64,000 nt of DNA. Source: Antechinus flavipes. Its lineage: Eukaryota. Below are positions 5,115-58,629 of the stretch, one piece after another. Both the position numbers and the translations under genes were made by a program. The stretch covers positions 610,266,001-610,330,000 of the forward strand of contig NC_067400.1 in NCBI RefSeq assembly GCF_016432865.1, in the 5' to 3' direction. Numbering within the stretch: position 1 is the first letter of the stretch; the number at the start of each line of letters is the position of its first letter. The notes under the pieces were generated by a model. That model had not been told where the DNA came from. It ran no database searches and worked only from the letters and a program-made list of their open reading frames with translations.

Positions 5115-5637
5115 CTAGGGAAGGTCCAGCAGGGTGTGCTCCTCGAAGAGTTTCTGGGTGATCTGGTAGACCTGGCAGATGAAGGGCATGGCTTCGTTCA
5201 GCATCTCCACGGCCTCCTCGGGGGGACCCACGTTCATGGTCTCCAGGAAGGCGTTCCGGGAGGGCAGCGTGCAGAAGGCCACCGTGACGGCCTTGCGGAT
5301 GAGCCAGGGGTGGTAGTTGGCCAGGGTGGTGTTGTAGGAGTCCGTGCAGAGCACCGAGGTCTTGCAGTCCTCCTGGCTAGTCCTGAGCCCCTCCAGGAAC
5401 ATCTGCAGCCAGTGCAGGGCCCGGTGCAGGCGGAGGATGGTGCGGCAGCCGGACTCGGGGTGCTCGGAGCGCTTCTGGAGGTCCACCAGCTTATTCTCCA
5501 TCTCGTACTGCACCATGGCCTGAAGGCTGGCGTAGTGGTCCTTCTGGTCGCTGCTGCGGAACCTCTCCATGATCTGGATTTTGGCGATCACGTCCTTGGA
5601 GATGAAGGAGAAGATGGTGCCGAGGTTGTTCAGGAAC
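5115..5637 (-). CDS. CPTP: Ceramide-1-phosphate transfer protein, last coding exon
   Basis: Acceptor CAG|G then FLNNLGTIFSFISKDV...SGCRTILRLHRALHWL...YHPWLIRKAVTVAF...LLDLP*. Matches the GLTP-fold CPTP as I recall it; 523 nt. With the first coding exon gives 645 nt = 214 aa. Confidence 0.97.
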
Positions 5638-6623
5638 CTGCATTTTCAAGACCAAACACAGCGTCGCTGGGCCGGAGGAACCTTGTCTCGGCAACTCTCT
5701 GAGAGGGGCCAGCTCCCCACTGGGAAAAGGGGGCCTGGTTCTCCCACTGGGGAAAGGGGCCCATTCCAGCCTGCCAAGAGCCGAGGGCAAAGGTTCTATC
5801 CCAAGGGGATCGCTGGGCCAGATTGCCACAGAAACACAATCAGCTGAAGCAACCAGGGAGGGAGTGGGCAGTGGCAAAGCAGGTATTCTGGTGCTCAGGG
5901 CAAGGGTCACCCACAGTAACAATAGAAAATACTTGAGGGACACAGGTCATCTAAATTCTAAAGCAAAACGCCACTTCCAAAATCAAAACAGCCCAACCTT
6001 GTGCAGCTGCTTCCCTCTCCCGGGAAGGGGGCGCAGTGACTGCTCGGACCGCCGGTATGGTGCCAGGAAAGCAGGGCCCCTCGGGCCAGCCCCTCAGCCA
6101 TACCCTGGGGCACCTAACACGCTAGGAGGGCTCCCCTATGTGTGCCTACATGCCGAGCCTCCGGGCCAGCGGAGAATCCAGTCCCTGGTGTTGTAAAATA
6201 CTTGGAAGGAATGTGGAGCCGCTGCCCCGCCAAGCCTGCCCACGTTGGTGGCCCTCACCTCGAAGCCTCTTCCCATAGAGGCCGTGTGACACTCGGGCCT
6301 CCCCCCCTCCCCCCCAAGGACATGTGTGGCCTCCTCCCCACACAAGAGAATAACGACAGCTCAGTCTGTAGAGCACTGCCTGCCAGGCACTGCACTAAAC
6401 GCTTTATAGTTAGCTCATCTGGGCTACCCAGTAGGCACATTCTATTACTATGCCCATTTTGCAGATGAGGAAACAGAGGCAAACATGTGAGTTTCTCAGG
6501 GTCACGCAGACAGTAAGGGTCTGAGTCTGGATCTGAACTCAGGTCACCCCCACTCCCGCCTGGAATGTCACCCAGGAGCCCCAGCAGCACGAGCTCCCCC
6601 CGGCCCGCAGACCCACCACTCAC

Positions 6624-10652: not shown

Positions 10653-13099
10653 GTAAGTTAAAGAAGTTAATAATTTGATTTAAAAGAAGAAAAGTTTTCC
10701 AGGTCAAATCAACAAAACTTTATAGTAATGAACTTGGAAGCTCGAATATTCTCTGCAAGAGAATACATCAGACACAAGTTAGCTCTTTGTTCTTTGCTCA
10801 GTTCATTTTGAACACTTTTACGTGTCCATTAGTGGTGGGGAGCTGCGTGTGTGACTAGAGACTCATTGATGCTTTCCTTTGCTGGGCAGTGTTATAAACA
10901 AGACTTTTTTCTGATTTATGTTTTCCTTTGGCTTTTGGCAAAAGGAATTCTTCCCTCAGGAGGGACACAGTTGGCATTGTGGGAAATTAGCCCCAAAATA
11001 TGTAGGACAGTGAGAGAGAATTCATTTTGAGGGCAAAACATTTTAGGGCAGATTATTCAGAGGAGAGAGCTGGAAGAATCAGAGAAGACTTCCTGGAGGA
11101 GGTAATGGGATGTGAATTGGGGATTAAAGGGGGAGACTATGTCAGGTCAGAAGAATAGGGGGCCATGCGTGTTGGACTGGAGCCAAGCTTGTGAAGGGCA
11201 GTGAATGCTTCCCTTATCTCGGAGTGGGAGTCGAGGACACCTCCTGGGAGGAGGGAGAGCAGGGCTTAGACATTCAGTAACAGAACATCCTTGGGAGACA
11301 CGGCTCTCCATGGGGAGGTAAAGTGGTTCGGGGCCCCTAGCACGCCACTAGGGGGTGCTCACCACTGAGTTTGCAGGAAGGGACCAGGACGTCCAGTGTA
11401 ACGATGTGACTTCTCTGAGACAGTTCTGTTCCCGGATTGATTCTTTGAGTTTTTGATACATCTTTAAAAATGACTCTTAAAGGGATTTGACTTCTTAGGC
11501 CCTCCAGACGTGATGGGTACAATCTTCAGCCTTTGAATAGGAAGGTGCTGGGCCTATGATCGGGACTTTTTCTCAGCTCCCATTGGTCAGTATTGATGCC
11601 GTCTCCCTCCTTCCCTGAGGCTCTGCTGAGCTCCAGCTGTGTGCAGAGGCCTGGGCTGGGTGCTGGGGGAGATAGGGAGTTTGGGTGATACCCTTGTGGA
11701 GCTCCTAGTCTGGTGGGAAAATGCCCCCAAACCTGTGGCTTTGTGTGGTCCTCTTCTGTAGTGTTGGCGACAGTGGCGGAAAAGGGGGCAAACTGAGCCT
11801 CAGTGTTAGACTGTCTGTCATCATTCATTGGTGGCTAAGGGTTTATACATGAGACCTTGTCCCTTGACCAGTGAGGATGCGATCCTGGAAGAAAGGAGCC
11901 TGCCGGGCCCCGGCTGCTCCCCGTCGGGGAGACCAGAAAGTGGATGTTGGGTGGTAGCTGGCAGAGGAAGGAGAAGCATCAGAGGAAACTAATCCCCTGA
12001 ACCCTCGGAGCCTTGGATGTGCGCTGGCCAGGGCAGCGACAGCAGTTTGTGCACCAGAGTCAGTGCAGAAGGGGAGCTTAGAAAGCCCCTTGAGTGAATC
12101 AGCGGGGGTGGGGGTGGGGGGTTGGTCTTCAGGGGCTTGAAAGCAGAAGTGCAAACCATGATGTAGGATAAAAGATGAGCGTCCACAGGCCAGTTGTTCA
12201 TACAGAAGCCTCACACTAAAATGCCTTTTTTATTTTTTCCTTTTTCGAAAAATATTTTGAAGTTATTTCAGTGTTTACGTTACGTACCTTAGGCATGTGA
12301 TGGTGTAGCGGAGCTGACCTCAAATACTTAGTGGCTGGGTAACTCATGGCAAGCCCTTTAACCTCAGTCTGCCTCAGTTTCCTCAACTGTAAAATGGGGG
12401 TGATAGCAGCACCTAATGGCCAGTGTTGTTGTGAGGACCAAATGAGCTCTTTGTAAATCGCTGAGAACAGTGCCTGGCACATAGGAGGCACCCCAGAAAT
12501 GCTCATTCCATGACTCTTGTTTCGTCCTTCCCAAATGAGACTTCTTCTATGACAAAGAAAACCAACCTGCACTAACCTGGGCCCATAGCTAATAGAATTT
12601 ACAAAACCCCACGCCCATTTCCCCTATGTGTCACACAGAAGGAGAGATGGAGTTCATCATCTCTTCTCTGGACCCAAGACTGATCATTATAATTGTAGCA
12701 TTTGGGCTTGTTTTATTGTTCTTTTTGTTTGCAAGGTTCCTAGACATTGTGGCTGTTTTCCTGGTTCGTCTTACTTTGCATCTGTTTATACAAGTCTTTT
12801 CCTGCTTTTCTGATTTTCATGAATTTGTCATGTGTATCACATATCACAGTTCAATCAGCCTCTATTTGATGGTCACCTATTGGTTCCAGTTTTTTGCTAC
12901 CACAAAAAGTAGCATTATGAATATTTTGGCAAATATGACATATTCCTTTCCTTGACTTCTTTGACTTCTTAGGCCCCTCCAGACATTACCAATACAATCT
13001 TCAACCTTTGAATAGGAAGAAGCTGTGTCTATAATCAGGACTTTTTCTCACCTTCCATTGATCAGTAGTTAATGCTGTCTCCTCCGATTTGTCCTCCAG

Positions 13100-28116: not shown

Positions 28117-28401
28117 TAGAGAAACTAGTTCAGCAAAACTGTAAAGCCATTGCATTTTAAAAGTGAGCAAGTGCTCTGTACTCGGAGAAACCGGAGCAAA
28201 GGCTGATTTGGGAGGGTAGAATGAGCATCTCTTCCCAGAAGAGGTGAATTTTGTAAGCGTAGAGAGACCTGGAATGGGACACACCGAGCGGGAGGAGAGA
28301 GGGGGAGGGAGGCTGAGGAAGGGGGCATTCATGGATGGTTTGGGGGAAGACAGTGCTTAGCAACCACATAGATTTGGATCGTGGCTTTTCTTTGGTTGCA
28401 G

Positions 28402-28499
28402 GGGCTGGTCAGGACGTGGGCCGCAGCTGCATCCTTGTCTCCATCGCAGGCAAGAACGTCATGTTGGACTGTGGGATGCACATGGGCTACAATGATGAT
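28402..28499 (+). CDS. INTS11: INTS11 coding exon 2
   Basis: (G)[32 protein letters not shown]; 98 nt, AG/GT. Confidence 0.97.
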
Positions 28500-29405
28500 G
28501 TAAGTTCCCCAGAAGCCCTGGAGCATGGGCCTCGGCACGGGGACCGGGGGTTATTGGGAAGGGGGGATGCTTGAAACGGGTGCAGAGAAATCCCCAAATC
28601 TGAGGAGTAAGTAAAGCTGCCTCCCCCATCCTCTTCTTTTGTGTGAGCCGTCTCTGTGGCCTTGGGTAACCAGAGTGAACCTTGCTCTGCCTTTTAATAG
28701 CTGTTAGGACCGAGGCCCCTGGCCTCAGAGCCACCCGGCTTCCCCGTCCAAGTCAGGCCCCGGGGCTGTGTGGGGAGCTTCCTTGCAGTCCCACCATTGT
28801 TTTTCCTCCCAGGAAGCCTGGCCTGGCACAGGGGAAGGCTGGGCTCTCGTGGCAGGCCAGGCCAGGCCAGGCCAGGCAGCTGGATGGGAGGCACTCTGAG
28901 CACATTTGCTTGGGAGCTGCTTAGAAGGTCTAAATACTAGAGAGTGGACCCTTGGTCAGGGAATTTGGGGTCTGGCTCTGCATGGGCTCCCAACATGGGC
29001 TCCTTCCTAGCCATGGGCTTAATGCCCTCACCAATTTTAGTTGGGATGGGGCTCTTCCTGCCCAGCGCCCTGCACTTGGAACTTTTCCCATCAGTAGAAG
29101 CCGCCCCTCTGCATTAAACAAGGAATGTTCTGGGGGTTTGAACCTGGCTTTTTTTTTTAAATAACCGCAAACCTTCAGGCATAATGACTGGTTTGCAAGG
29201 TCAGCCCAGAGCCCAAAGTTGGCAGCATTTCCACCCTTCACTTCTGAGCACTTCACGGCTTTGAAAAATAAATGAGGCAAACTTAAGAGCGCTCCGTGGG
29301 CCGGCTCCGCTGTCTGACGCCGCGGCTCGAGCCTGGTCTGGCTCTCCCTCCTGGGCACTGTGGCCCTCCTGAATAACGGCCTCTCTTGGTCTCGCTTTTC
29401 CTTAG

Positions 29406-29479
29406 AGACGCTTTCCAGACTTTTCTTACATTACCCAGAATGGAAGGTTGACTGACTTCCTGGACTGCGTCATTATCAG
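29406..29479 (+). CDS. INTS11: INTS11 coding exon 3
   Basis: RRFPDFSYITQNGRLTDFLDCVII(S); 74 nt. Confidence 0.97.
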
Positions 29480-30483
29480 GTAGGAGCCTCAGTGGATCTT
29501 GCGAAGGGAGAGAATATACTGGGGTGGGAGAACCAGGCCCTGGGGGGCTCGTCCTGTCTGGGCTCTGACCATGCGCACTGGACAGTTGGGCCCTGCTCCC
29601 TGTCACCTGGGCTAGGTGGCTAACGTGGGCACGCCGACCTGGGGGGCGAGCACACGTCTGCTTTATAGCTGGGGAAAGGGGTCTGGGGCTCCGGCCGTAG
29701 TTTTGGGCCCGTGTCTCACACTGGTCTATGTCAGAGGTCGGGCTTCCCTCATCCTGAGACTCTTTCTGCCTCTACTGTGTAAATCTTCAAGGCAGTGGGG
29801 TGGATTCCAGATCTGTGCTCCCGGGCAAGGCAGGTGACTTGTCCCTGCCTCAGTTTCCTCCTCTGTAAAAGAAGAGGTCAGGGGAGTGGCTCCGAGGTCC
29901 CTTCCTTCTCCAGATTGGAGTCTTCACTTGACACAAAAATGTGAGTTGTCATTAGCCAGGAGAGGAACCACTTGATGGCCAGACCACTCCTCAAACTCCT
30001 CCCACAGCGCTGTTGTCTGTGAGGGGCCGTTCTCACGGTCGCGGGGTGTCGTGCTCTTGGGGTGATGGAAGGTGCCTGGCCGCTGGGCCCCCCAGCCGGC
30101 ACCTAGGCACCCCCACTCCGGCCATCATCCTCTCTTTTAGAGTTCTTTCTTGATAAATCATGTTCTAACGCAGCAGATAAACAAGTCCTCAAACCACCCG
30201 CAGTGTGTACTTCCCAAAGACTTAAACCAAACAGCACGAGAGCGTTTACAGGCCACGCAGTGAATGCCCCTTGTGCTTTACCGCTTGTCAGGGGCAGAGT
30301 TCCAGACATTTTAAGGAGGTAGTCCCGGGTCATCCCTTGTCTCCAGCCCAGGGTGACCCCGGGCTCTGGTGTTCATTTGCATAATTAGAGTAGGTGGGTT
30401 TCTGACCTCCTCTCGGCAGCTCTTTGTACAGATCCCACTCTCCTGGGTTCTCACTCTCTGTGCTCTTCATTCTTGACCCCCAG

Positions 30484-30712
30484 CCACTTCCACTTGGATC
30501 ACTGCGGGGCCTTGCCGTACTTCAGTGAGATGGTGGGCTATGACGGCCCCATCTACATGACCCACCCCACCAAGGCCATCTGCCCCATTCTGCTGGAGGA
30601 CTACCGGAAGATCACCGTGGACAAGAAGGGGGAGACCAACTTCTTCACTTCCCAGATGATCAAGGACTGCATGAAGAAAGTTGTGGCTGTCCACCTGCAC
30701 CAGACTGTGCAG
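30484..30712 (+). CDS. INTS11: INTS11 coding exon 4 (metallo-beta-lactamase HxHxDH motif)
   Basis: [29 protein letters not shown]...VHLHQTVQ; 229 nt. Confidence 0.98.
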
Positions 30713-32019
30713 GTCAGGGGGAAGGCCGGGAAGAGCAGGGGCCGGGCTGGCTGGGCCGGGCTGACTGGGACGGGCTCCAGAACGCAGGCCACTGCAGCTG
30801 CCTTGGCTTAGGTACTCCAGAGCTAGAATAATGAGCAGCTCTCTGAGAGCAGCTGAGGGAGAGCCGGCTGCAGCCATGAGCTACAAGAGCACCCGCAAAA
30901 GCCAGCCCTTACTGCCCCGTCTTGCCTCAGGTCACAGAATGAGGCTTCTGTGCTTCTGTGGCAGCTGAATCATGTTTTAATGTTCTTTGAGGTCTTAGTT
31001 CCCCAGAATGGAGGTAGCATAGGAGGACTGACCTCAGTGGTCAAGTGTCCACCCCACCCTTCCTCCTCTCAGACCAAACCAAATGTGACCCCGCTGCCAA
31101 GGGCCGTGCACTTTAGAGTGTCCCACTCAGGGCAGCCCTTTGCTTTTCATTGGCAGGAGGCTAACATCTCCCATTGCTAGGAAGTTTTTACCATTTCAAT
31201 CCTCAATCTGATCTTACCATCTACTGCCAGTTGTTTTTGGTTCTGGCCCCTAGGGCATAGTGCTCCAAGGCAGCCCCCATAGCCTCCAGAGGCTTTTTTC
31301 CTGTTGTAAAATGTGTCTTTGGGCTTCACAAATAACTCCCTTTAATTTTTCTCTTTTTCCTCTTTTTAAATTGCTTTTTTTTCTGATTATACACGTGCCA
31401 AATTCTTATTTTTTTAAAATACACATTTCTTTATGAATCATGCTGAGAACTTTTCTCTTGTAAACGATGTCCGTACCAGCGTTAAAGAGCCTTTTCCTGC
31501 CAAATGCTGTACAAAGCAACCATCCTTATTCCCGAAGAGCTTTGAGATAATATTGCACACGGAGGACATAGCATTATGGAACCTCAAACCTTGGGCACAG
31601 ATGCCCAGGAGGAGGAGGGGACTGCACCACCAGGACTAGGGAAGGAATGGGGAGAAGGTTGAGGGAAATATCCTGGCAACACCTGTGGGTGCTGGAGATT
31701 GGCTCAGGGGCTCAGTGGTCTTGGTTCGAGGGTGTCGAGGTTACCATGAGTCATGGGGGTGGAGGCGGGGAATAGAGCAGGAACCATTTTTCCTTTTCCC
31801 TTTAAAACCTTGGCTGCAGTTCTGAGGAGAGTGCTGGCTAGAGGATGGAGGCATTTCTGTGGCAGGTTGCTTTCTGGCAGGCCCGAATCGCCAGCTGTGG
31901 CAGGGAGCAGAGCTTGGGTTTGGGCCCGCCTGGCGTCTCTGCCAGCTACCTGTGCTGCCCGCCCCTGCCTCCCTTCTGTCACAGCCCACAGGATGAAAGC
32001 CGGCCTCTTCCCTCCGTAG

Positions 32020-32118
32020 GTGGACGACGAGTTGGAAATCAAGGCCTACTATGCGGGGCACGTGCTGGGTGCTGCCATGTTCCAGATCAAAGTTGGCTCT
32101 GAATCTGCCGTTTACACA
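32020..32118 (+). CDS. INTS11: INTS11 coding exon 5
   Basis: [33 protein letters not shown]; 99 nt. Confidence 0.97.
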
Positions 32119-32239
32119 GTAAGGCGCCCGGCCTCCCGGGGCACGGGGGAGGCGCTTTGGGGAAGTGGGAAGAGGGTGGGCAGAGATGCTCTTTAAATGC
32201 AAGGCTGATGGCTGCTTTCCTCTGGCTCTCTTTGACTAG

Positions 32240-32274
32240 GGCGATTACAACATGACTCCGGACCGGCACTTGGG
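32240..32274 (+). CDS. INTS11: INTS11 coding exon 6
   Basis: GDYNMTPDRHL(G); 35 nt, TAG/GTGAGT. Confidence 0.96.
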
Positions 32275-33114
32275 GTGAGTGGGACGGTGAGCTTCTGCTC
32301 GAGTGGGGGTTTGTCTTTGTGCTTTTCCCACGGGGGATTCACAGCCAGGATGCCAATTAACCTGCGAGGGCGTGGGTGGCTGCTTGACGTTCCTTCATCC
32401 ACGTCTGCTTAGAACAGCCTGTATCGGGGGCGCATCTGAGAGCTTCTCTTACTTGGAAGTCTGTGCCAGTCTGATCAATACCTCCCTTCCCCCCATGCCC
32501 GTGGCCACTGAGTGAGAGTGGCCGCCCTCAGCTGCCTCAGGAGTGCCGGGCGAACTTTGCTGTGGAGATGAGCAGACGGGATGGGGGCGCATCCCCTCTA
32601 CCCTCCCTCTGTCTTTGGGGCCATTTAATTTTGACTTCTCCCAGGAGGCTTCATTTGCTTAGCCTGTCTCCTTGGAGAACAAATGGGTTAAAAGGTTGAG
32701 AGGGACTTGGAGGGTCTTAAAAGCTCCAGGGACCTTCATGGCCATCGAATCCCACCTCATTCTTTGGAGGAGGAAGCTGAGGGGGATAGTGAAGTCCGGG
32801 CTACAAACAGGAAGTTCTGAAGTGGGATTTGACCCCCCAAGTCTTCCTGACTCTAGGTCCAGGGCTCTCTCACTATATCTCATAAGGTGTTCAGGAAGGC
32901 CAGAAATGTGACTTTGTGGCATCACCGCCCTTGTTGAAAGGGGATCAGCGTTGCCCAGAGAGTCCGGCAGATGGGCCTTCCTTGCCCGGGAGCTTGGGAG
33001 GGAGGCCAGAGCCTGCTGGTGACTGCTGAGAAGGGCCGGGGCAGACCTCGGGGCAGACCAGGGCAGCTGACCCCGGCACTGAGCTTCATGGCGGGTGTCC
33101 TGCTTGCCTCGCAG

Positions 33115-33253
33115 GGCTGCCTGGATCGATAAGTGCCGGCCTAACCTGCTCATCACCGAGTCCACTTACGCCACAACCATCCGAGACTCCAAGCGCTGCC
33201 GGGAGAGGGACTTCCTGAAGAAAGTCCACGAGACGGTGGAGAGGGGAGGAAAG
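33115..33253 (+). CDS. INTS11: INTS11 coding exon 7
   Basis: [46 protein letters not shown]; 139 nt. Confidence 0.97.
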
Positions 33254-34156
33254 GTGAGCAAGCAGGACGAGGACCGGAGCCCTGGGAGGCTGGCAGCGTG
33301 AGCATTTATTAAGTGCTTGCTGCGTACAGGTGCTTTGCACTTGGTGCACACCTGGCACATGAGGAAGACTCCCTGCCCTCAGGGACCTTCTGTCTTAATT
33401 GGGACAAGAGAGCACAAGAAAGGGAGCGGAGGGCAGAAAGAGTGCACAGACTTGTGGGGAGGATCTTGTGGATCGTGTGGGAAAGATCTTCTGGATTATG
33501 TGGGGAGGATCTTCTGGATTGCCTGGTGAGGATTGAGAACTGTGGGTTCTCTGGTTCACTGAAGCATGTGGAGCAGCGTGTGGATGGGGCTTGGAGGCTC
33601 CTTGGGTATCCAGCCCGAGATGGGGGTTCCCGGTACAGCTCAGGCTCCGTTCTTGTTGATCCGTGCACGGATGGTGTCAGAGGCCAGGGCAGCGAGCCAG
33701 GGCCCCTAGGGCCAAGCTCTGGCTGATGCTCCTGTCGGCAGCAGCCGAGGATTGGAGCTGGAGGGCCCCTGTAGGTCCAGGGCAGTCCCCGCAGTGTAGA
33801 GAGAGGGAAACTGAGGCCCGGACTGCAGCCGAGCCTGCGTTCCCCTGCCGCACACTCTTCAGCTGTGGCTGAGTTAGGAAAGACAGCGGGGAGGAGCTCA
33901 GAGGGGTCTCAGCATTCTGGGGAAAAGTTATGGCTCCTTAGCACTGGGCACAGGTGAGACCGGGTCCAGGATGCGGCAGCCCCAGAGCCTGGGGCTCCCA
34001 ACGCCGGGGAGGGTGGCCCCAGCTGCTGTTTCTCTGCTTCCTGAGGCACTCTGAGCAGGAGAGGGGTGGGGAGGAGAGGAGGGACCCCCAGGGCCTGGGA
34101 AAGGCAAGGGCTGAGGCTCCTCCGCTAATGCTTCTGGGCCCTGGCTTTTGCTGCAG

Positions 34157-34221
34157 GTTCTCATCCCAGTGTTCGCCCTGGGCCGGGCTCAAGAGCTCTG
34201 CATCCTGCTGGAGACGTTCTG
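34157..34221 (+). CDS. INTS11: INTS11 coding exon 8
   Basis: [21 protein letters not shown](W); 65 nt. Confidence 0.97.
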
Positions 34222-34558
34222 GTGAGTCTGGGGGCTCCTGTCCTTGGGCGTGGGGAAGAGAGATCCCGGAGGGCGGGTGCCCTGGCAGGGACCTTGGGGC
34301 GGGCCCAGGAAAGTGCCCAAGGACCAGCCCGTGGGCATAGGAGCATCTGCCTCTGGTTCCCTTGGCTGCTGCTGAGCGTGGATGGGACAGTGGGGAGCAG
34401 AAGAGCCCCCTTCTGAGCCTGCTGGTTGGGGCGGAGTTAGGGTTCCCCCCTTGTTGTTGGTCCCTCCCCCGCACACATGATCCCCAGGGCCTGCAGGAGG
34501 CTGATGGAGAGGGAGAGTGGGGGGCAGGCCCTGACCGCTTCCCCGTCCCCTCCCAAAG

Positions 34559-34748
34559 GGAAAGAATGAACCTGAAGGCCCCGATCTACTTCTCCACGGG
34601 CTTGACGGAGAAGGCCAATCACTACTACAAGCTCTTCATCACCTGGACCAATCAGAAGATCCGGAAGACGTTTGTGCAGAGAAACATGTTTGAGTTCAAG
34701 CACATCAAGGCTTTCGACCGAGCTTTTGCCGACAACCCCGGGCCGATG
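34559..34748 (+). CDS. INTS11: INTS11 coding exon 9
   Basis: [26 protein letters not shown]...DNPGPM; 190 nt, AAG acceptor. Confidence 0.97.
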
Positions 34749-35039
34749 GTAGGGGAGGGCGGGCCTTGGCTGGACCTTGTCTGGGCGGGGGCAGGGGAGG
34801 GGGGTGGTAGAGCCTGGACCTCCAGTGCTCCCCGAGGAGGGGCCGGCCAGAAGGAAGATGGGAATATCCGGGCCTGCGCCCCTTTCTGGACGTTGGGGTT
34901 TGGGGCCTTGTCCGGCAGGGGGCCTTTGGGATGATGAGGGCACCGGGTCCTGGTCCGCCTTCTGTGCCCGCTCCACAGCAGCGGCTAATGGCGGGTCCTT
35001 GGCATTGCCACCACCGCCTCCTCTCCTTCCTCCACTCAG

Positions 35040-35123
35040 GTTGTCTTTGCCACCCCGGGCATGCTGCATGCTGGGCAGTCCCTGCAGATCTTCAGGAAAT
35101 GGGCCGGGAACGAGAAGAACATG
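35040..35123 (+). CDS. INTS11: INTS11 coding exon 10
   Basis: [28 protein letters not shown]; 84 nt. Confidence 0.97.
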
Positions 35124-35489
35124 GTAGGGGGGTGGCCCTGGCCAGGAGCCCCAAGCGGGAACCATCTTCCCTTGCTGGCCCCTGTTATTTTAGGAGCATG
35201 AAAGGGTGGGGCAGGGACAGCTGTCTGCCCCCAGTGGGGAGGAGGAGGAGCCTTTAGTGTGGGGTGGGGGCTGAAGATGGCACCTTCCTCCTCGGGGGAT
35301 CAGGCCTTAGTGCCCCGTCCTGGCGCCGCCTGGTTTACTGCCCCCCAGTCAGCTTTCTTCCAGGGAGGAGGGGGAGGGGACCATCCCCAGCCACTTCCCA
35401 TGGGGTCTCCCTGGCTCCTTGCATGGGGGGGGGTGCCCTGCACCTGCCCTTCGTGGGGCTGTGGGCCCACATCCTCTTTCTGCTTGCAG

Positions 35490-35579
35490 GTCATCATGCC
35501 GGGCTACTGTGTGCAGGGGACTGTGGGCCACAAGATCCTGAGCGGGCAGCGGAAGCTGGAGATGGAGGGGAGGCAGATC
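35490..35579 (+). CDS. INTS11: INTS11 coding exon 11
   Basis: [30 protein letters not shown]; 90 nt. Confidence 0.97.
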
Positions 35580-36551
35580 GTAAGTCCCCGGCATGGGGGG
35601 CGTGGGGAGGGGGCTCTCCCACAGGTCATCCTTGGCTCCCAGCCCCCACACTGGTCAGGTGCCCTCAGCAGACAAGGTGTTCCTCCCCCCCCCCCCCCCC
35701 CCCGGGCCCCTCCTCCCCAATCCCAGGCCTGAAATCCTCCCACTGGGTGGGAAGTGACTTGACCTTGGTTAACTTGTGTCATTCACTTGTCAAAAGAAGG
35801 GGCAGGGTCTAGACTCCTGAGCCCGGCCCATCCCCATCTTGCAGAAGGAATGGAAGTTCAGAGTCAGATTATCTGTCCAGGGTCTCCCAGGAAGGGGCAG
35901 GTCTGAGCCCAAGTCTTTGGTCTGTGCTGGTGAAAAGCCGGCCTTCCTACAAGGTCAGAGGCCGAGAGCCCGAGGGCCTGGCAGGATGGCTGGGGGGCAG
36001 CAGTTGCCTGCAGACCCCCCCACAGGGCCCGGGGCCGCCTTCTCCCCAGGGGGGACCCGTGGAACTCTCCTGGAAGCAGGAGCAGGGCTGGATCCCACCC
36101 CACGGCCCTGCCCGTCCCTCGCCGGCCCTCTGTGCAAAGGGACAACCCCATTTCCAGAGGGCTCCCCTCAGCGCCCCACGGAAGGTGCCGGTGCCCTGGG
36201 CCCGTGGCCCCAGCAGCCTGGGTCCCTTCTGGAGCCCGAGCAGCCGTGGGGTTGGGCAGGGAGGCTGGGGCAGCCTCACAGACAGCCTGGTTTGGCCCTC
36301 AGCGCTTCTGTGGTGGCTGCTTGTGTTCCCCATTTCACAGATGAGGAAACTGAGGCAAAGGGGAGGGACTTGTCACATAACTGCTACCAGAGGCAGGATC
36401 TGAACCCAGCCAGGTCCTGCCGACATCCCCAGTGCTCTTACACTGCGCTGCTTCCCGGGGGGGGAGGGGGGAGGGGGGGCGGGAGTGGCAGCCGGGACTG
36501 GCGGTGACTAATGTCTCTGCCCTCGCCGTGTGCCCCCCCCACCCCCCCCAG

Positions 36552-36714
36552 CTCGAGGTGAAGATGCAGGTGGAGTACATGTCCTTCAGCGCCCACGCCG
36601 ACGCCAAGGGCATCATGCAGCTGGTGCGCCAGGCGGAGCCGGACAACGTGCTGCTGGTCCACGGGGAGGCCAAGAAGATGGAGTTCCTGAAGCAGAAGAT
36701 CGAGCAGGAATTCC
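36552..36714 (+). CDS. INTS11: INTS11 coding exon 12
   Basis: [54 protein letters not shown]; 163 nt, weak donor C|GTGTGT. Confidence 0.96.
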
Positions 36715-36990
36715 GTGTGTGGGCCAGGCCGGGGCGGGGGGGGGGGGGGGGATGGGGGAGCCCCTGCCAGGGGGGATGGGGGGGAGCACTCAGCCCTGGG
36801 GCAGACTCGGGGCTGCAGGGTCTCTGCGCAGTTTGGTTATTGACGGTTGGGTTTGAGGGGAGCGTCGGCCCCGGGGCCCGAGAGCGGGCAGAGCTCTGAG
36901 TGCGTGAGCCGGGGGAGGCCGGGGAGTCTGGGCCCCCTGCGGGGGAACCACCCCGGCCCAGGCTTAACGGTCACGTGGTGCCTTTGTCAG

Positions 36991-37098
36991 ATGTGAACTG
37001 CTACATGCCGGCCAACGGAGAGACGGTCACCCTGCTCACCCACCCCAACATCCCCGTGGGCATCTCGCTGGGCCTGCTGAAGCGGGAGATGGCGCTGG
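36991..37098 (+). CDS. INTS11: INTS11 coding exon 13
   Basis: (H)[35 protein letters not shown]; 108 nt. Confidence 0.96.
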
Positions 37099-37201
37099 GT
37101 ACTGTCCCGGGAGGGGCCGGGGGGCAGGAGCCGGGCTGCTGGAGGGGGGGAGGGGAAGCGAGGTTCTGGTGGGTGAGGGTCTCCTTCTCCTCCCCCCACA
37201 G

Positions 37202-37263
37202 GCCTCCTCCCCGACGCCAAGAGGCCCAAGCTGATGCACGGCACGCTGATCATGAAGGACAAT
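37202..37263 (+). CDS. INTS11: INTS11 coding exon 14
   Basis: (G)[20 protein letters not shown]; 62 nt. Confidence 0.96.
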
Positions 37264-37405
37264 GTGAGCGGCCTCTCTGAGCCGGCCAGCGGGGACTCGG
37301 GGAGCTTCCGGGGCGGGGGCCTACTGGTCACCTGGGGAGGGGCTGGGCAGGGCCCTGGGAGGCCCCCCCACCCCGAGATCCTAACACTCTGTCCCCTCCC
37401 CCCAG

Positions 37406-37548
37406 AATTTCCGGCTGGTGTCCTCGGAGCAGGCCCTTAAGGAGCTGGGCCTGGCGGAGCACCAGCTGCGCTTCACCTGCCGCGTGCACATCCACGACAC
37501 GCGCAAGGAGCAGGAGACGGTTCTGCGCGTGTACAGCCACCTGAAGAA
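37406..37548 (+). CDS. INTS11: INTS11 coding exon 15
   Basis: [47 protein letters not shown]; 143 nt. Confidence 0.96.
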
Positions 37549-37655
37549 GTAAGGGGGGCCCCCACTCCTCCCGGGGGGCCTGGGCCGTCCCTCCCTCCCC
37601 CCCCGGGGCCCAGTATCTGTGGCCCCACAGCCGGCCCCTCTCCTCTCCCCCTCAG

Positions 37656-37785
37656 CGTTCTGAAGACGCACTCGGTCCAGCACCTGCCCGACGGCTCGGT
37701 CATGGTGGAGTCCATCCTCATCCAGGCCACGGCCCACTCGGAGGACCCGGGCACCAAAGTCCTGCTGGTCTCCTGGACCTACCAG
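37656..37785 (+). CDS. INTS11: INTS11 coding exon 16
   Basis: (N)[43 protein letters not shown]; 130 nt. Confidence 0.96.
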
Positions 37786-37874
37786 GTGAGAGCCCGTTGG
37801 GCAGCCGGGGCCTGGGGATAGGGGGGGCGGCCCCAGGGAAAGCCCTGACCCTCCTCCTCCATCTTGGCCCGCAG

Positions 37875-37940
37875 GATGAAGAACTGGGCAGCTACCTCAC
37901 GTCGCTGCTGAAGAAGGGGCTCCCGCAGGCCCCCAGCTGA
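37875..37940 (+). CDS. INTS11: INTS11 coding exon 17 (stop)
   Basis: DEELGSYLTSLLKKGLPQAPS*; 66 nt. The 17 exons sum to 1803 nt = 600 aa. Confidence 0.97.
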   Translation, partial: DEELGSYLTSLLKKGLPQAPS

Positions 37941-38169: not shown

Positions 38170-38175
38170 ATTAAA
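38170..38175 (+). terminator. Candidate INTS11 poly(A) signal ATTAAA
   Basis: First canonical hexamer after the INTS11 stop, about 230 nt downstream. Confidence 0.65.
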
Positions 38176-38204
38176 CAAAAAGTCTCCCAAGAGCTTCCTT
38201 GCCT

Positions 38205-38210
38205 TTTATT
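38205..38210 (-). terminator. Candidate minus-strand poly(A) signal AATAAA (PUSL1 / GPCR-remnant transcript)
   Basis: Only canonical hexamer I saw on the minus strand between the PUSL1 stop (39264) and the INTS11 3' end. Confidence 0.65.
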
Positions 38211-38279
38211 CACCTGGAGCAGCAGCCCCCTTGGCACAGGCCTCGGGCCCTGGCACATGGAGGGGTGGATGGGCAGGGC

Positions 38280-38889
38280 CCCCTCCCCCCAAGCAGGCTG
38301 GCGAGGGGCTGAGGCCAGGGTCGGGGCCCCCGAGGTGGCGCAGCAGGTGGCAGAGGGAGGGCAGCAAGCAGACGGTGCACATGAGCACGCTGAAGCTGAG
38401 GGTCCTGAGGGCCCCACGCCCACGCCGGGTCCTGCGGCCGGAGGCCACGCGCCAGGCCAGCAGCGGGCAGCCGCTCAGGATGGCGACAGAAGGCGCAGGA
38501 AGCCCCCCACCAGCGCGTAGGAGCCCGCGTCTGCCACAAAGTTCTCGAAGCAGGAGGTGCGGTTGTCGGGGCCGATGTGACATGGGGCCGCCCAGGGCCA
38601 GGGGACCGGCCGCAGCTCCAGCCAGAGCCCCGCGCTGCCCACGGCCCAGTGGGTCCTGCTGAGCTGGAGGCGCGCCCAGGGCCGGGCCAGGGAGCTGGCA
38701 GAGAAGCGAGCCGGTGCCGAGGTAGAGGAAGGCCCAGTGCAGGCCAGCCCCGAGCGCCTCGGCCGCCACGTTCCCAGCCAGGTCCAGGGCAAAGACCACA
38801 CTGTAGGCCACGGCCAGCTGCTGGTGGCCCCCAGACCCAGGGCCGAGGGGCTTTCCGTGTCATTCGGGGCCGGCAGTGGCAGGGCCACT
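38280..38889 (-). pseudogene. Degenerate class A GPCR (P2Y5/LPAR6-like) remnant
   Basis: Colinear pieces in two frames: N-glycosylation sequon NDT; TM1-like QLAVAYSVVFALDLAGNVAA (38820-38761); ICL2/TM4-like LARPWARLQLSRTHWAVGSAGLWL; ECL2 DNRTSCFENF (38567-38538; human LPAR6 as I recall has ACFENF); TM5-like YALVGGFL/PSVAILSGC; basic ICL3 and TM6-like ALRTLSFSVLMCTVCLLP. At least 3 frameshifts; TM2, DRY and an intact TM7 not found. Confidence 0.75.
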
Positions 38890-39263: not shown

Positions 39264-39352
39264 TCAGAGCCCGGGCGCCTCGGGCACGGCTCCTGGCCCG
39301 CAGCCTCCTGGGTCAGACGGGCGATTGTACTGGTCCTTGCCAGGGCCCCAGT
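39264..39352 (-). CDS. PUSL1: PUSL1 exon 8 (stop)
   Basis: Pyrimidine tract plus CAG acceptor; (D)WGPGKDQYNRPSDPGGCGPGAVPEAPGL*; 89 nt. Phase fits exon 7, but this tail is poorly conserved. Confidence 0.8.
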
Positions 39353-39479
39353 CTGTGAAGAGAAGGCGGAGCCAGATGTGAGGCAGAAAAGGGGCTCCCG
39401 CTGCCCCGGGCACCTGGAGCCCCTGCTGACGCCCGCCCCCCGCCCAGGGTCTGCGGTCCAGGAGGCCCCGGGTGCTCAC

Positions 39480-39642
39480 CGAGGCCATCGTAGTGCACCG
39501 ACTTCAGGAACAGGCCCCGGGCGGGGGCCACCAGCAAGGGAGGGCCGCTCTGGGGGTCCCCGCTCTCCAGCTTCTCCTTCACCTGGGCCGGGGTCAGGGC
39601 CCCCAGCCCCACGGCCACCAGGCAGGCCGTCATCCTCCGCAC
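39480..39642 (-). CDS. PUSL1: PUSL1 exon 7
   Basis: VRRMTACLVAVGLGALTPAQVKEKLESGDP...APARGLFLKSVHYDGL; 163 nt; TruA C-terminal motif. Confidence 0.95.
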
Positions 39643-40649: not shown

Positions 40650-41530
40650 TGTCTATTTCCCCCCTCTCTCTGTCTCTTTCTCCCCCTCTCTGTCTCTCTC
40701 TCCCCCCTCTCTCTGTCTCTTTCTCCCCCCTCTGTCTCTCCCCCCTCTCTCTGTCTATCTCTCCCCCCTCTCTCTCCCCCCTCTCNNNNNNNNNNNNNNN
40801 NNNNNNNNNNNNNNNNNNNNNNNNNNNNNNNNNNNNNNNNNNNNNNNNNNNNNNNNNNNNNNNNNNNNNNNNNNNNNNNNNNNNNNNNNNNNNNNNNNNN
40901 NNNNNNNNNNNNNNNNNNNNNNNNNNNNNNNNNNNNNNNNNNNNNNNNNNNNNNNCTCTGTCTCTTTCTCCCCCCTCTGTCTCTCTCTCCCCCCCCTCTC
41001 TCTATCTCCCCCCTCTCTCTGTCTCTATCTCCCCCCTCTCTCTATCTCCCCCCTCTCTCTGTCTATCTCCCCCCTCTGTCTTTCTCTCCCCCCTCTCTCT
41101 GTCTCTCTCTCCCCCCCCTCTCTGTCTCTTTCTCCCCCCTCTCTCTGTCTCTCCCCCCTCTCTCTATCTCCCCCCTCTCTCTGTCTTTTTCTCCCCCCTC
41201 TGTCTCTCTCTCCCCCCTCTCTCTATCTCCCCCCTCTCTCTGTCTCTTTCTCCCCCCTCTGTCTCTCTCTCCCCCCTCTCTCTCTCTCCCCCCTCTCTCT
41301 GTCTCTCTCTCCCCCCTCTCTCTGTCTATCTCCCCCCTCTCTCTGTCTTTTTCTCCCCCCTCTGTCTCTCTCTCCCCCCTCTCTCTATCTCCCCCCTCTC
41401 TCTGTCTCTTTCTCCCCCCTCTCTCTATCTCCCCCCTCTCTCTGTCTTTTTCTCCCCCCTCTGTCTCTCTCTCCCCCCTCTCTCTGTCTATCTCCCCCCT
41501 CTCTCTATCTCTTTCTCCCGCCTCTGTTTC
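40650..41530. repeat. Pyrimidine-rich minisatellite (CCCCCTCTCTCTGTCTCTTTCT-like units) containing an assembly gap
   Basis: Read directly; N gap at 40786-40955; lies in PUSL1 intron 5. Confidence 0.95.
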
Positions 41531-57907: not shown

Positions 57908-58629
57908 GTGAGAAACCTCGGACCCGGGACCGGCCGTGGTCCGGGAGCCCTCGGGACCCCGGGACTCCGCGCGTCCCGAGGGACGGAGCAAGGCAGGGAC
58001 CGGGAGCCATGGCCCGGCCCGAGGGGGACGGGGGGGCAAAGGCGGGGATCGAGACACACCCAGGCGGAGAGGCAGGGGAGACACCCGCCCGGAGACGGAC
58101 ACAGGTCCGGAGACAGAGGGAGACAGGACCCCGGACCCAGAGACCGAGAGCGGCACCCCCCCAGAGAGAGACAGAGGCGCAAAGACACAGANNNNNNNNN
58201 NNNNNNNNNNNNNNNNNNNNNNNNNNNNNNNNNNNNNNNNNNNNNNNNNNNNNNNNNNNNNNNNNNNNNNNNNNNNNNNNNNNNNNNNNNNNNNNNNNNN
58301 NNNNNNNNNNNNNNNNNNNNNNNNNNNNNNNNNNNNNNNNNNNNNNNNNNNNNNNNNNNNNNNNNNNNNNNNNNNNNNNNNNNNNNNNNNNNNNNNNNNN
58401 NNNNNNNNNNNNNNNNNNNNNNNNNNNNNNNNNNNNNNNNNNNNNNNNNNNNNNNNNNNNNNNNNNNNNNNNNNNNNNNNNNNNNNNNNNNNNNNNNNNN
58501 NNNNNNNNNNNNNNNNNNNNNNNNNNNNNNNNNNNNNNNNNNNNNNNNNNNNNNNNNNGAAATAGAGACAGGGACATAAAGAGAGACAAGAGACCCCACA
58601 CCCAGAGATGGAGGCAGACGGAGGCAGGC

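Follow-up and report, generated by a model that had tools for sequence, protein, structure and literature searches.

Gene content of the locus

The window, i.e., the whole stretch of 64 kb that was analysed, contains the genes INTS11 on the plus strand and PUSL1 on the minus strand and, between them at 38290-38882 on the minus strand, what is left of a class A GPCR gene with a single exon, recognised by homology and synteny and referred to below as the fossil. INTS11 is represented by 15 exons, each ungapped, that are colinear with fish INTS11 from 28386 to 37925. The C-terminus of PUSL1 (...LRLLFTDWGPGKD...APGL and stop) is common to the PUSL1 gene calls of the dunnart (Sminthopsis crassicaudata) and Dromiciops. 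Since the ORF 39313-39642 (-) reads past the splice donor, the ORF track places the end of PUSL1 about 50 bp too far upstream. The features that delimit the interval are as follows:

37938-37940, plus strand: INTS11 stop codon, in the last coding exon
38170-38175, plus strand: ATTAAA poly(A) signal of INTS11, conserved in dunnart
38205-38210, minus strand: AATAAA poly(A) hexamer, the sole canonical one on this strand between the PUSL1 stop codon and INTS11, conserved in dunnart
39264-39266, minus strand: PUSL1 stop codon, with the terminal coding exon in ORF 39264-39488, about 380 bp upstream of the fossil

As the only AATAAA after the PUSL1 stop codon lies beyond the fossil, the latter is likely to be part of the PUSL1 3' UTR. 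The ATTAAA and AATAAA signals face each other 30 bp apart, and the INTS11 and minus-strand transcripts should therefore overlap tail-to-tail. This poly(A) block (38170-38210) is conserved with dunnart although the receptor upstream of it is dead. Rfam and tandem-repeat scans detected no family and no repeat in the fossil.

Elsewhere in the window, a coding exon of CPTP (GLTP domain) was found at 5115-5639 on the minus strand, 58% identical to the Alosa protein; the first INTS11 exon that could be detected (~28.4 kb) is about 22 kb away. Runs of N occur at 40786-40955, inside the PUSL1 gene region, and at 58192-58558. A weak mir-761-like match at 37143-37199 (+), in the INTS11 3' region, scored 24.9 bits (E 0.08), where the gathering score is 82, and is most likely due to chance.

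Identification of the receptor fossil

The 201-aa ORF at 38206-38811, compared with 5.8 billion proteins, gave a single match (E 8.9e-19), a 348-aa 7tm_1 protein of the greater bilby that carries the database name 'lysophosphatidic acid receptor 6-like'. BLASTP of this protein against the window returned colinear matches that alternate between two reading frames. The nearest relative of the fossil, an intact dunnart receptor of 319 aa (P0007), matches the window with a tblastn E value of 2.5e-49. About 573 nt of the fossil can still be aligned to the dunnart CDS, with 89% nucleotide and 82% amino-acid identity over the retained columns. When the marsupial orthologues were used as tblastn queries, nothing in the 64-kb window outside the fossil matched below E 0.001, and the window has no second copy. 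The dunnart locus (21 kb) is colinear with the window along its full length, introns included, at 72-87% identity, by which the DNA of the window belongs to a marsupial rather near to Sminthopsis.

The dunnart receptor P0007 matches PF00001 with 108.8 bits (cut-off 30.5), and its turtle, fish and bird relatives with about 200 bits. The three raw ORFs of the window gave no Pfam 7tm_1 match, and a phmmer search of the PDB with two of them returned no GPCR. The Pfam scan suggested by the first-pass annotation, an earlier description of this DNA, is thus blank on raw ORFs, although the fossil is real. Being 82% identical to a 7tm_1 protein, the fossil descends from a 7tm_1 gene and is no longer one: of the seven TM segments only TM1, half of TM3, TM4, TM5 and TM6 are left, while TM2 and TM7 are deleted.

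Anatomy and lesions

The lesions were listed from the nucleotide alignment to the dunnart CDS and from a codon alignment to which dunnart, Dromiciops and a Logan contig each contributed an intact marsupial CDS. In the list below, all features are on the minus strand, and positions of the form a/b are the window bases flanking a deletion.

38880-38882, minus strand: start-codon site, CTG here and ATG in dunnart, Dromiciops and the Logan contig
38841-38879, minus strand: N-terminal ectodomain remnant with an N-D-T sequon (38864-38856); NDTG is invariant in eight marsupial proteins
38841/40, minus strand: 1-bp deletion, a frameshift that ends the ectodomain remnant
38769-38840, minus strand: TM1 remnant QQLAVAYSVVFALDLAGN, up to N1.50, matching dunnart HQQLAVAYGVVFALGLAEN
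38769/68, minus strand: 23-bp deletion, which together with the 130-bp deletion removes the end of TM1, TM2 and ECL1
38740-38768, minus strand: ICL1 remnant, 29 nt, out of frame, bounded by the 23-bp and 130-bp deletions
38740/39, minus strand: 130-bp deletion
38692-38739, minus strand: first half of TM3, HWAFLYLGTGSLLC, from the alignment to dunnart
38698/97 and 38693/92, minus strand: 11-bp and 6-bp deletions, which remove the DRY-equivalent site (dunnart LSLDSY) and shift the frame
38582-38691, minus strand: ICL2 and TM4, ARPWARLQLSRTHWAVGSAGLW and then LAGAAAGPLALGGP in the other frame, from BLASTP to bilby in two frames
38620/19, minus strand: 7-bp deletion, frameshift inside TM4-ECL2
38582/81, minus strand: 2-bp deletion, frameshift inside TM4-ECL2
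38497-38581, minus strand: ECL2 with the conserved Cys, GPDNRTSCFENFVADA, and the start of TM5 (YALVGGFL), from alignment and BLASTP
38526/25, minus strand: 15-bp deletion, in frame
38497/96, minus strand: 1-bp deletion, a frameshift that ends the TM5-start segment
38309-38496, minus strand: TM5, basic ICL3, TM6 and the start of ECL3 (PSVAILSGCPLLAWRVASGRRT...ALRTLSFSVLMCTVCLLP-SLCHLLRHLGGP), from alignment and BLASTP
38360/59, minus strand: 3-bp deletion, in frame, which removes the Tyr of CFLPY
38291-38308, minus strand: junction of a deletion of about 300 bp, by which TM7, helix 8, the C-tail, the stop codon and about 120 bp of 3' flank are gone

In total, the start codon is lost and 11 deletions of 1 to about 300 bp have occurred, at least seven of which shift the frame. 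Past the largest of them, the blastn alignment picks up again at position 11084 of the dunnart locus (L001), which corresponds to window position 38290. No in-frame ATG is present upstream of 38882 on the minus strand. As dunnart, Dromiciops and the Logan contig have none of these deletions, all the deletions are derived in the lineage of the window. The ancestral frame of the fossil is still free of stop codons (178-codon alignment), as is expected at the GC content of the surrounding stretch (about 72%). With the ATG, TM2, the DRY site and TM7 gone, no receptor can be made.

The receptor-like pieces that the first-pass annotation had described here are present on the minus strand, far beyond chance (E 8.9e-19 and E 2.5e-49), and the parts that it named (NDT sequon, TM1, a TM3 scrap, ICL2-TM4, ECL2 with CFENF, TM5, ICL3 and TM6) all match dunnart in that order. 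It was right that the frame is broken; the three frameshifts it counted become at least seven frame-shifting deletions, including those at 38620/19 and 38582/81, which it missed and between which the true frame reads LAGAAAGPLALGGP. Its first shift, placed at a G5 run, is a 1-bp deletion at 38841/38840, about 10 bp 5' of that run, and the text that it read after TM1 (NVAAEALGAGL) is the out-of-frame ICL1 remnant between the 23-bp and 130-bp deletions. TM2 and the DRY motif are deleted as it stated, and TM7, of which it took most to be missing, is wholly gone. The loss of the start codon (CTG) was absent from it.

Intact orthologues and synteny

The bilby-protein query found orthologues in wombat, brushtail possum, koala, Dromiciops, dunnart and Gracilinanus. 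The marsupial proteins are 56-73% identical to one another and bear six automatic names: LPAR6-like, PAR4-like, GPR183-like, GPR68-like, PAR2-like and P2Y2-like; that of dunnart P0007 is 'proteinase-activated receptor 2-like'. Across vertebrates there are at least nine contradictory labels, the further ones being LPAR4, CysLTR2-like and GPR17-like. No placental or monotreme protein was among the matches of the bilby-protein search or of a search of 1.8 billion representatives with a marsupial profile.

To establish gene order, PUSL1 was taken as the PseudoU_synth_1 gene, the receptor as the 7tm_1 gene and INTS11 as the IntS11_C gene (600 aa). The order PUSL1, receptor, and INTS11 facing both is present in dunnart, bilby, wombat, Gracilinanus, Dromiciops and a passerine bird. 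In the five marsupials, PUSL1 and the single-exon receptor share a strand, with the receptor 190-850 bp downstream, and the receptor and INTS11 are arranged tail-to-tail. In Alosa (shad, a teleost), where INTS11 is again the tail-to-tail neighbour of the receptor, CPTP comes next. The same slot in marsupials, a bird and shad indicates that the gene has been there since at least the bony-vertebrate ancestor. The fused fish predictions P0014, P0022 and P0023 were rejected as proxies of PUSL1-receptor synteny, as they are tandem 7tm_1 fusions from other clades. In the PUSL1-INTS11 interval, whose inspection the first-pass annotation proposed, other marsupials and a bird have an intact receptor. 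The lineage-specific receptor loss that the annotation inferred agrees with this, with the intact orthologue beside INTS11 in a teleost and with the lack of any placental orthologue among the matches of the protein searches.

The fossil shares with the intact marsupial orthologues the locus, the orientation, the NDT sequon, ECL2 CFENF, TM6 C-x-C-F/L-L-P and HLLRHLGGP. What sets it apart from them is the loss of the ATG, TM2, the DRY-site region, TM7, the C-tail and the stop codon, together with its frame-shifting deletions, at least seven in number. Among birds, the orthologues share only 50-88% identity, most of them being database entries named 'LPAR6 protein, partial', and the query passerine (Falcunculus) has DLW where DRY is expected; the receptor thus evolves fast in birds too.

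Phylogenetic position of the receptor family

A profile of eight marsupial proteins, searched against 1.8 billion representatives, gave a graded series of matches, with bird, catsharks, newts, turtles, clupeid fish and cod at 130-170 bits, followed by generic delta-branch receptors. Against the PDB, no solved receptor stood out: GPR68 scored 103 bits, followed by GPR183, APLNR, GPR4 and zebrafish LPAR6a (90), with GPR17, P2Y2, CysLT2, PARs and human LPAR6 (82 bits) lower in the list.

The phylogenetic analysis with IQ-TREE, in which the fossil was translated with X at each break, placed it as sister to dunnart (100/100) inside the marsupial clade. The orthogroup of the locus is made up of marsupials + birds (98/95) + teleosts (100/96). 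Its sister clade (98/90) consists of turtle, catshark, newt, bichir and sturgeon sequences and is situated at another locus. No PUSL1 or INTS11 signal was detected within 10 kb of the tortoise 'LPAR6-like' gene of this paralogue clade, where tblastx yielded noise, and the catshark locus has no called neighbours within 10 kb. The paralogue clade seems to be without a named mammalian member.

LPAR5 and LPAR6 form a clade (99/97) that excludes the receptor family (98/90), and membership of the LPAR6 orthogroup was accordingly rejected; 'LPAR6-like' is a database nickname and no proof of membership. Judged by its sequence, the receptor is a member of a vertebrate clade without a name that annotation pipelines label 'LPAR6-like'. 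The corresponding label in the first-pass annotation is the one used by the NCBI and B10K pipelines, and the tree does not bear it out as an affiliation; 'lipid-sensing' has no basis, as the receptor is not known to sense lipids. CFENF and CxxP, cited there as marks of the P2Y5/LPAR6 group, are general features of this class A branch. The family has in common with LPAR6 (P2Y5) and LPAR5 the class A delta branch, ECL2 C-F-E-x-F and TM6 CFxP, and its non-marsupial orthologues also share their TM7 DPxxY. GPR68, GPR183, APLNR and GPR4, however, score as high as LPAR6 or higher with the family profile, and LPAR6 is located inside RB1, not beside PUSL1.

The careful tree (IQ-TREE) gave no resolved placement of the family relative to PTAFR, GPR17, GPR4 and PARs. 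PTAFR is among the nearest named clades in a 135-sequence FastTree, a grouping that IQ-TREE does not resolve and for which there is no shared-synteny evidence. The 2019 catalogue 'Cartography of rhodopsin-like GPCRs across vertebrate genomes' proposes the orphan clades GPR199, GPR201 and GPR202, purinergic-branch receptors of fishes, sauropsids and marsupials with no human member, placed near PTAFR, GPR4/68 or LPAR4/6 (PMC6504862). Their taxon pattern fits the receptor family, the comparison being one of descriptions only (Ensembl identifiers, PMC6504862). No sequence tie of the family to zebrafish lpar6b (PMC8564058) was established. In the literature on a PUSL1/INTS11-linked GPCR, pseudogene or eutherian loss, no paper on the receptor gene was found, nor were functional data found for any family member.

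Lost activation motifs in the marsupial receptors

All eight intact marsupial copies are without D2.50, R3.50, N7.49 and Y7.53, while the bird and fish orthologues retain the canonical NLAxxD (D2.50), DRY and N/DPxxY. Marsupial TM2 reads LSMTxA, DRY is replaced by DSY, DRC or DCH, and TM7 reads SPxxC or SPxxG. The marsupial stem branch is very long, about 1.2 substitutions per site (IQ-TREE).

The open frame is kept in eight species spanning the marsupial radiation. Among the three intact CDSs, every gap is in frame (a multiple of 3 nt), with a pairwise omega of 0.38-0.57. Codon-level comparison thus indicates that the intact marsupial copies are under purifying selection despite the four missing activation residues. 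A frame and an omega of this kind without the activation motifs suggest that the receptor is still functional, probably not via classical G-protein activation.

Selection and timing of the loss

The dN/dS ratios were calculated by the Nei-Gojobori method from 178 shared codons with 63 substitutions. On the window branch dN is 0.08 and dS 0.10 (omega 0.73-0.80); on the dunnart branch dN is 0.02-0.03 and dS 0.08-0.10 (omega 0.27-0.28). The window branch, at an omega of about 0.75, shows relaxed selection in comparison with the sister branch, where omega is about 0.27. In the protein tree (IQ-TREE), the end branch of the fossil is about seven times longer than that of dunnart (0.22 vs 0.031). Nucleotide identity to dunnart across the fossil is 80.5% with gaps counted, a value that falls among those of the flanking introns. 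Assuming an omega of 0.28 while the gene was alive and of 1 after its death, the gene would have been dead for about two thirds of the time since the dunnart split, an estimate based on few substitutions.

Alternative explanations

The lesions would be assembly errors, and the gene intact in the animal, if the region had been misassembled. It has 72% GC, there are N gaps elsewhere in the window, and all the lesions in the alignment are deletions, which collapse-type errors can mimic; single small deletions in such a stretch could indeed be errors. This explanation nevertheless has to face eleven separate lesions, among them losses of 130 bp and about 300 bp, as well as the substitution of ATG by CTG. 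The sevenfold longer amino-acid branch and the dN/dS of about 0.75 are, moreover, substitution signals that collapse does not create. The adjoining INTS11 exons, which are similarly GC-rich, are clean, and their integrity argues against assembly error in the fossil; fish INTS11 was the reference in this control, since the dunnart introns also align to the window (tblastx). We regard an intact gene as very improbable. A second alternative is that the receptor-like pieces have no gene ancestry and are a pattern that arose by chance in a GC-rich 3' UTR, as the long ORFs in all frames here and the raw ORFs without a Pfam or PDB match might suggest. Such a pattern is refuted by the bilby and dunnart matches, the latter at E 2.5e-49 with nothing else in 64 kb below E 0.001, by the 21-kb locus alignment, by synteny that is exact in seven other species and by the tree, in which the fossil nests inside the marsupial clade with 100/100. 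Its probability is negligible.

The remnant might instead be functional, as part of the PUSL1 3' UTR, through the overlap with the INTS11 transcript end or as a new short peptide. Conservation with dunnart is good at the AATAAA/ATTAAA pair and in the 100 bp or so around it, and the fossil is probably within the PUSL1 transcript. The identity of the fossil is, however, no higher than that of introns, its sequence is still being lost by deletion, it has no Rfam family or repeat structure, and no ATG-initiated ORF exists in the receptor frame, so that a function of the remnant is highly unlikely. A processed (retro-copied) pseudogene was also rejected: the fossil lies at the parental locus itself and has no flanking repeats. 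It is a genuine pseudogene, unitary within the scope of the single 64-kb window. The term 'unitary pseudogene', already used in the first-pass annotation, thus stands as a dead gene at its ancestral position with derived lesions and relaxed selection, and its first word holds within the window. We are confident that the fossil is the dead orthologue of an ancient vertebrate class A receptor gene without a name of its own.

Evolutionary interpretation

The ancestral gene was a single coding exon just downstream of PUSL1, tail-to-tail with INTS11. In the dasyurid-like marsupial lineage of the window, the receptor presumably became dispensable after the split from the dunnart lineage and, judging by dN/dS, would have drifted for about two thirds of the time since then. 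The ATG was lost, and the eleven deletions that accumulated took TM2, the DRY site and TM7. The remaining 590 bp or so are probably transcribed passively in the PUSL1 3' UTR. The loss of the activation motifs in marsupials may help to explain the loss of the gene in the dasyurid lineage and, more widely, in placentals.

A broader reading, which we offer tentatively as one possibility, joins these results. It envisages an uncharacterised vertebrate family about 430 million years old and missing from placentals, with two paralogues, one of which was fixed between PUSL1 and INTS11. On the marsupial stem the family would have given an atypical receptor that does not rely on classical G-protein activation (a scavenger, an arrestin-biased receptor or a co-receptor, for instance), and the dasyurid pseudogene would be the natural knockout of this receptor.

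The fossil itself is one more lineage-specific gene loss, real but fairly ordinary. Since the 7tm_1 HMM scan of the raw ORFs was blank, such fossils will be missed unless close intact orthologues serve as queries. The fossil points to an unstudied receptor whose position is conserved from teleosts to birds and marsupials and for which these searches found no placental protein. The marsupial form has lost the four residues most tied to G-protein activation, yet is selectively maintained, and the dasyurid pseudogene would provide a natural knockout and a dated point for the dispensability of its residual function.
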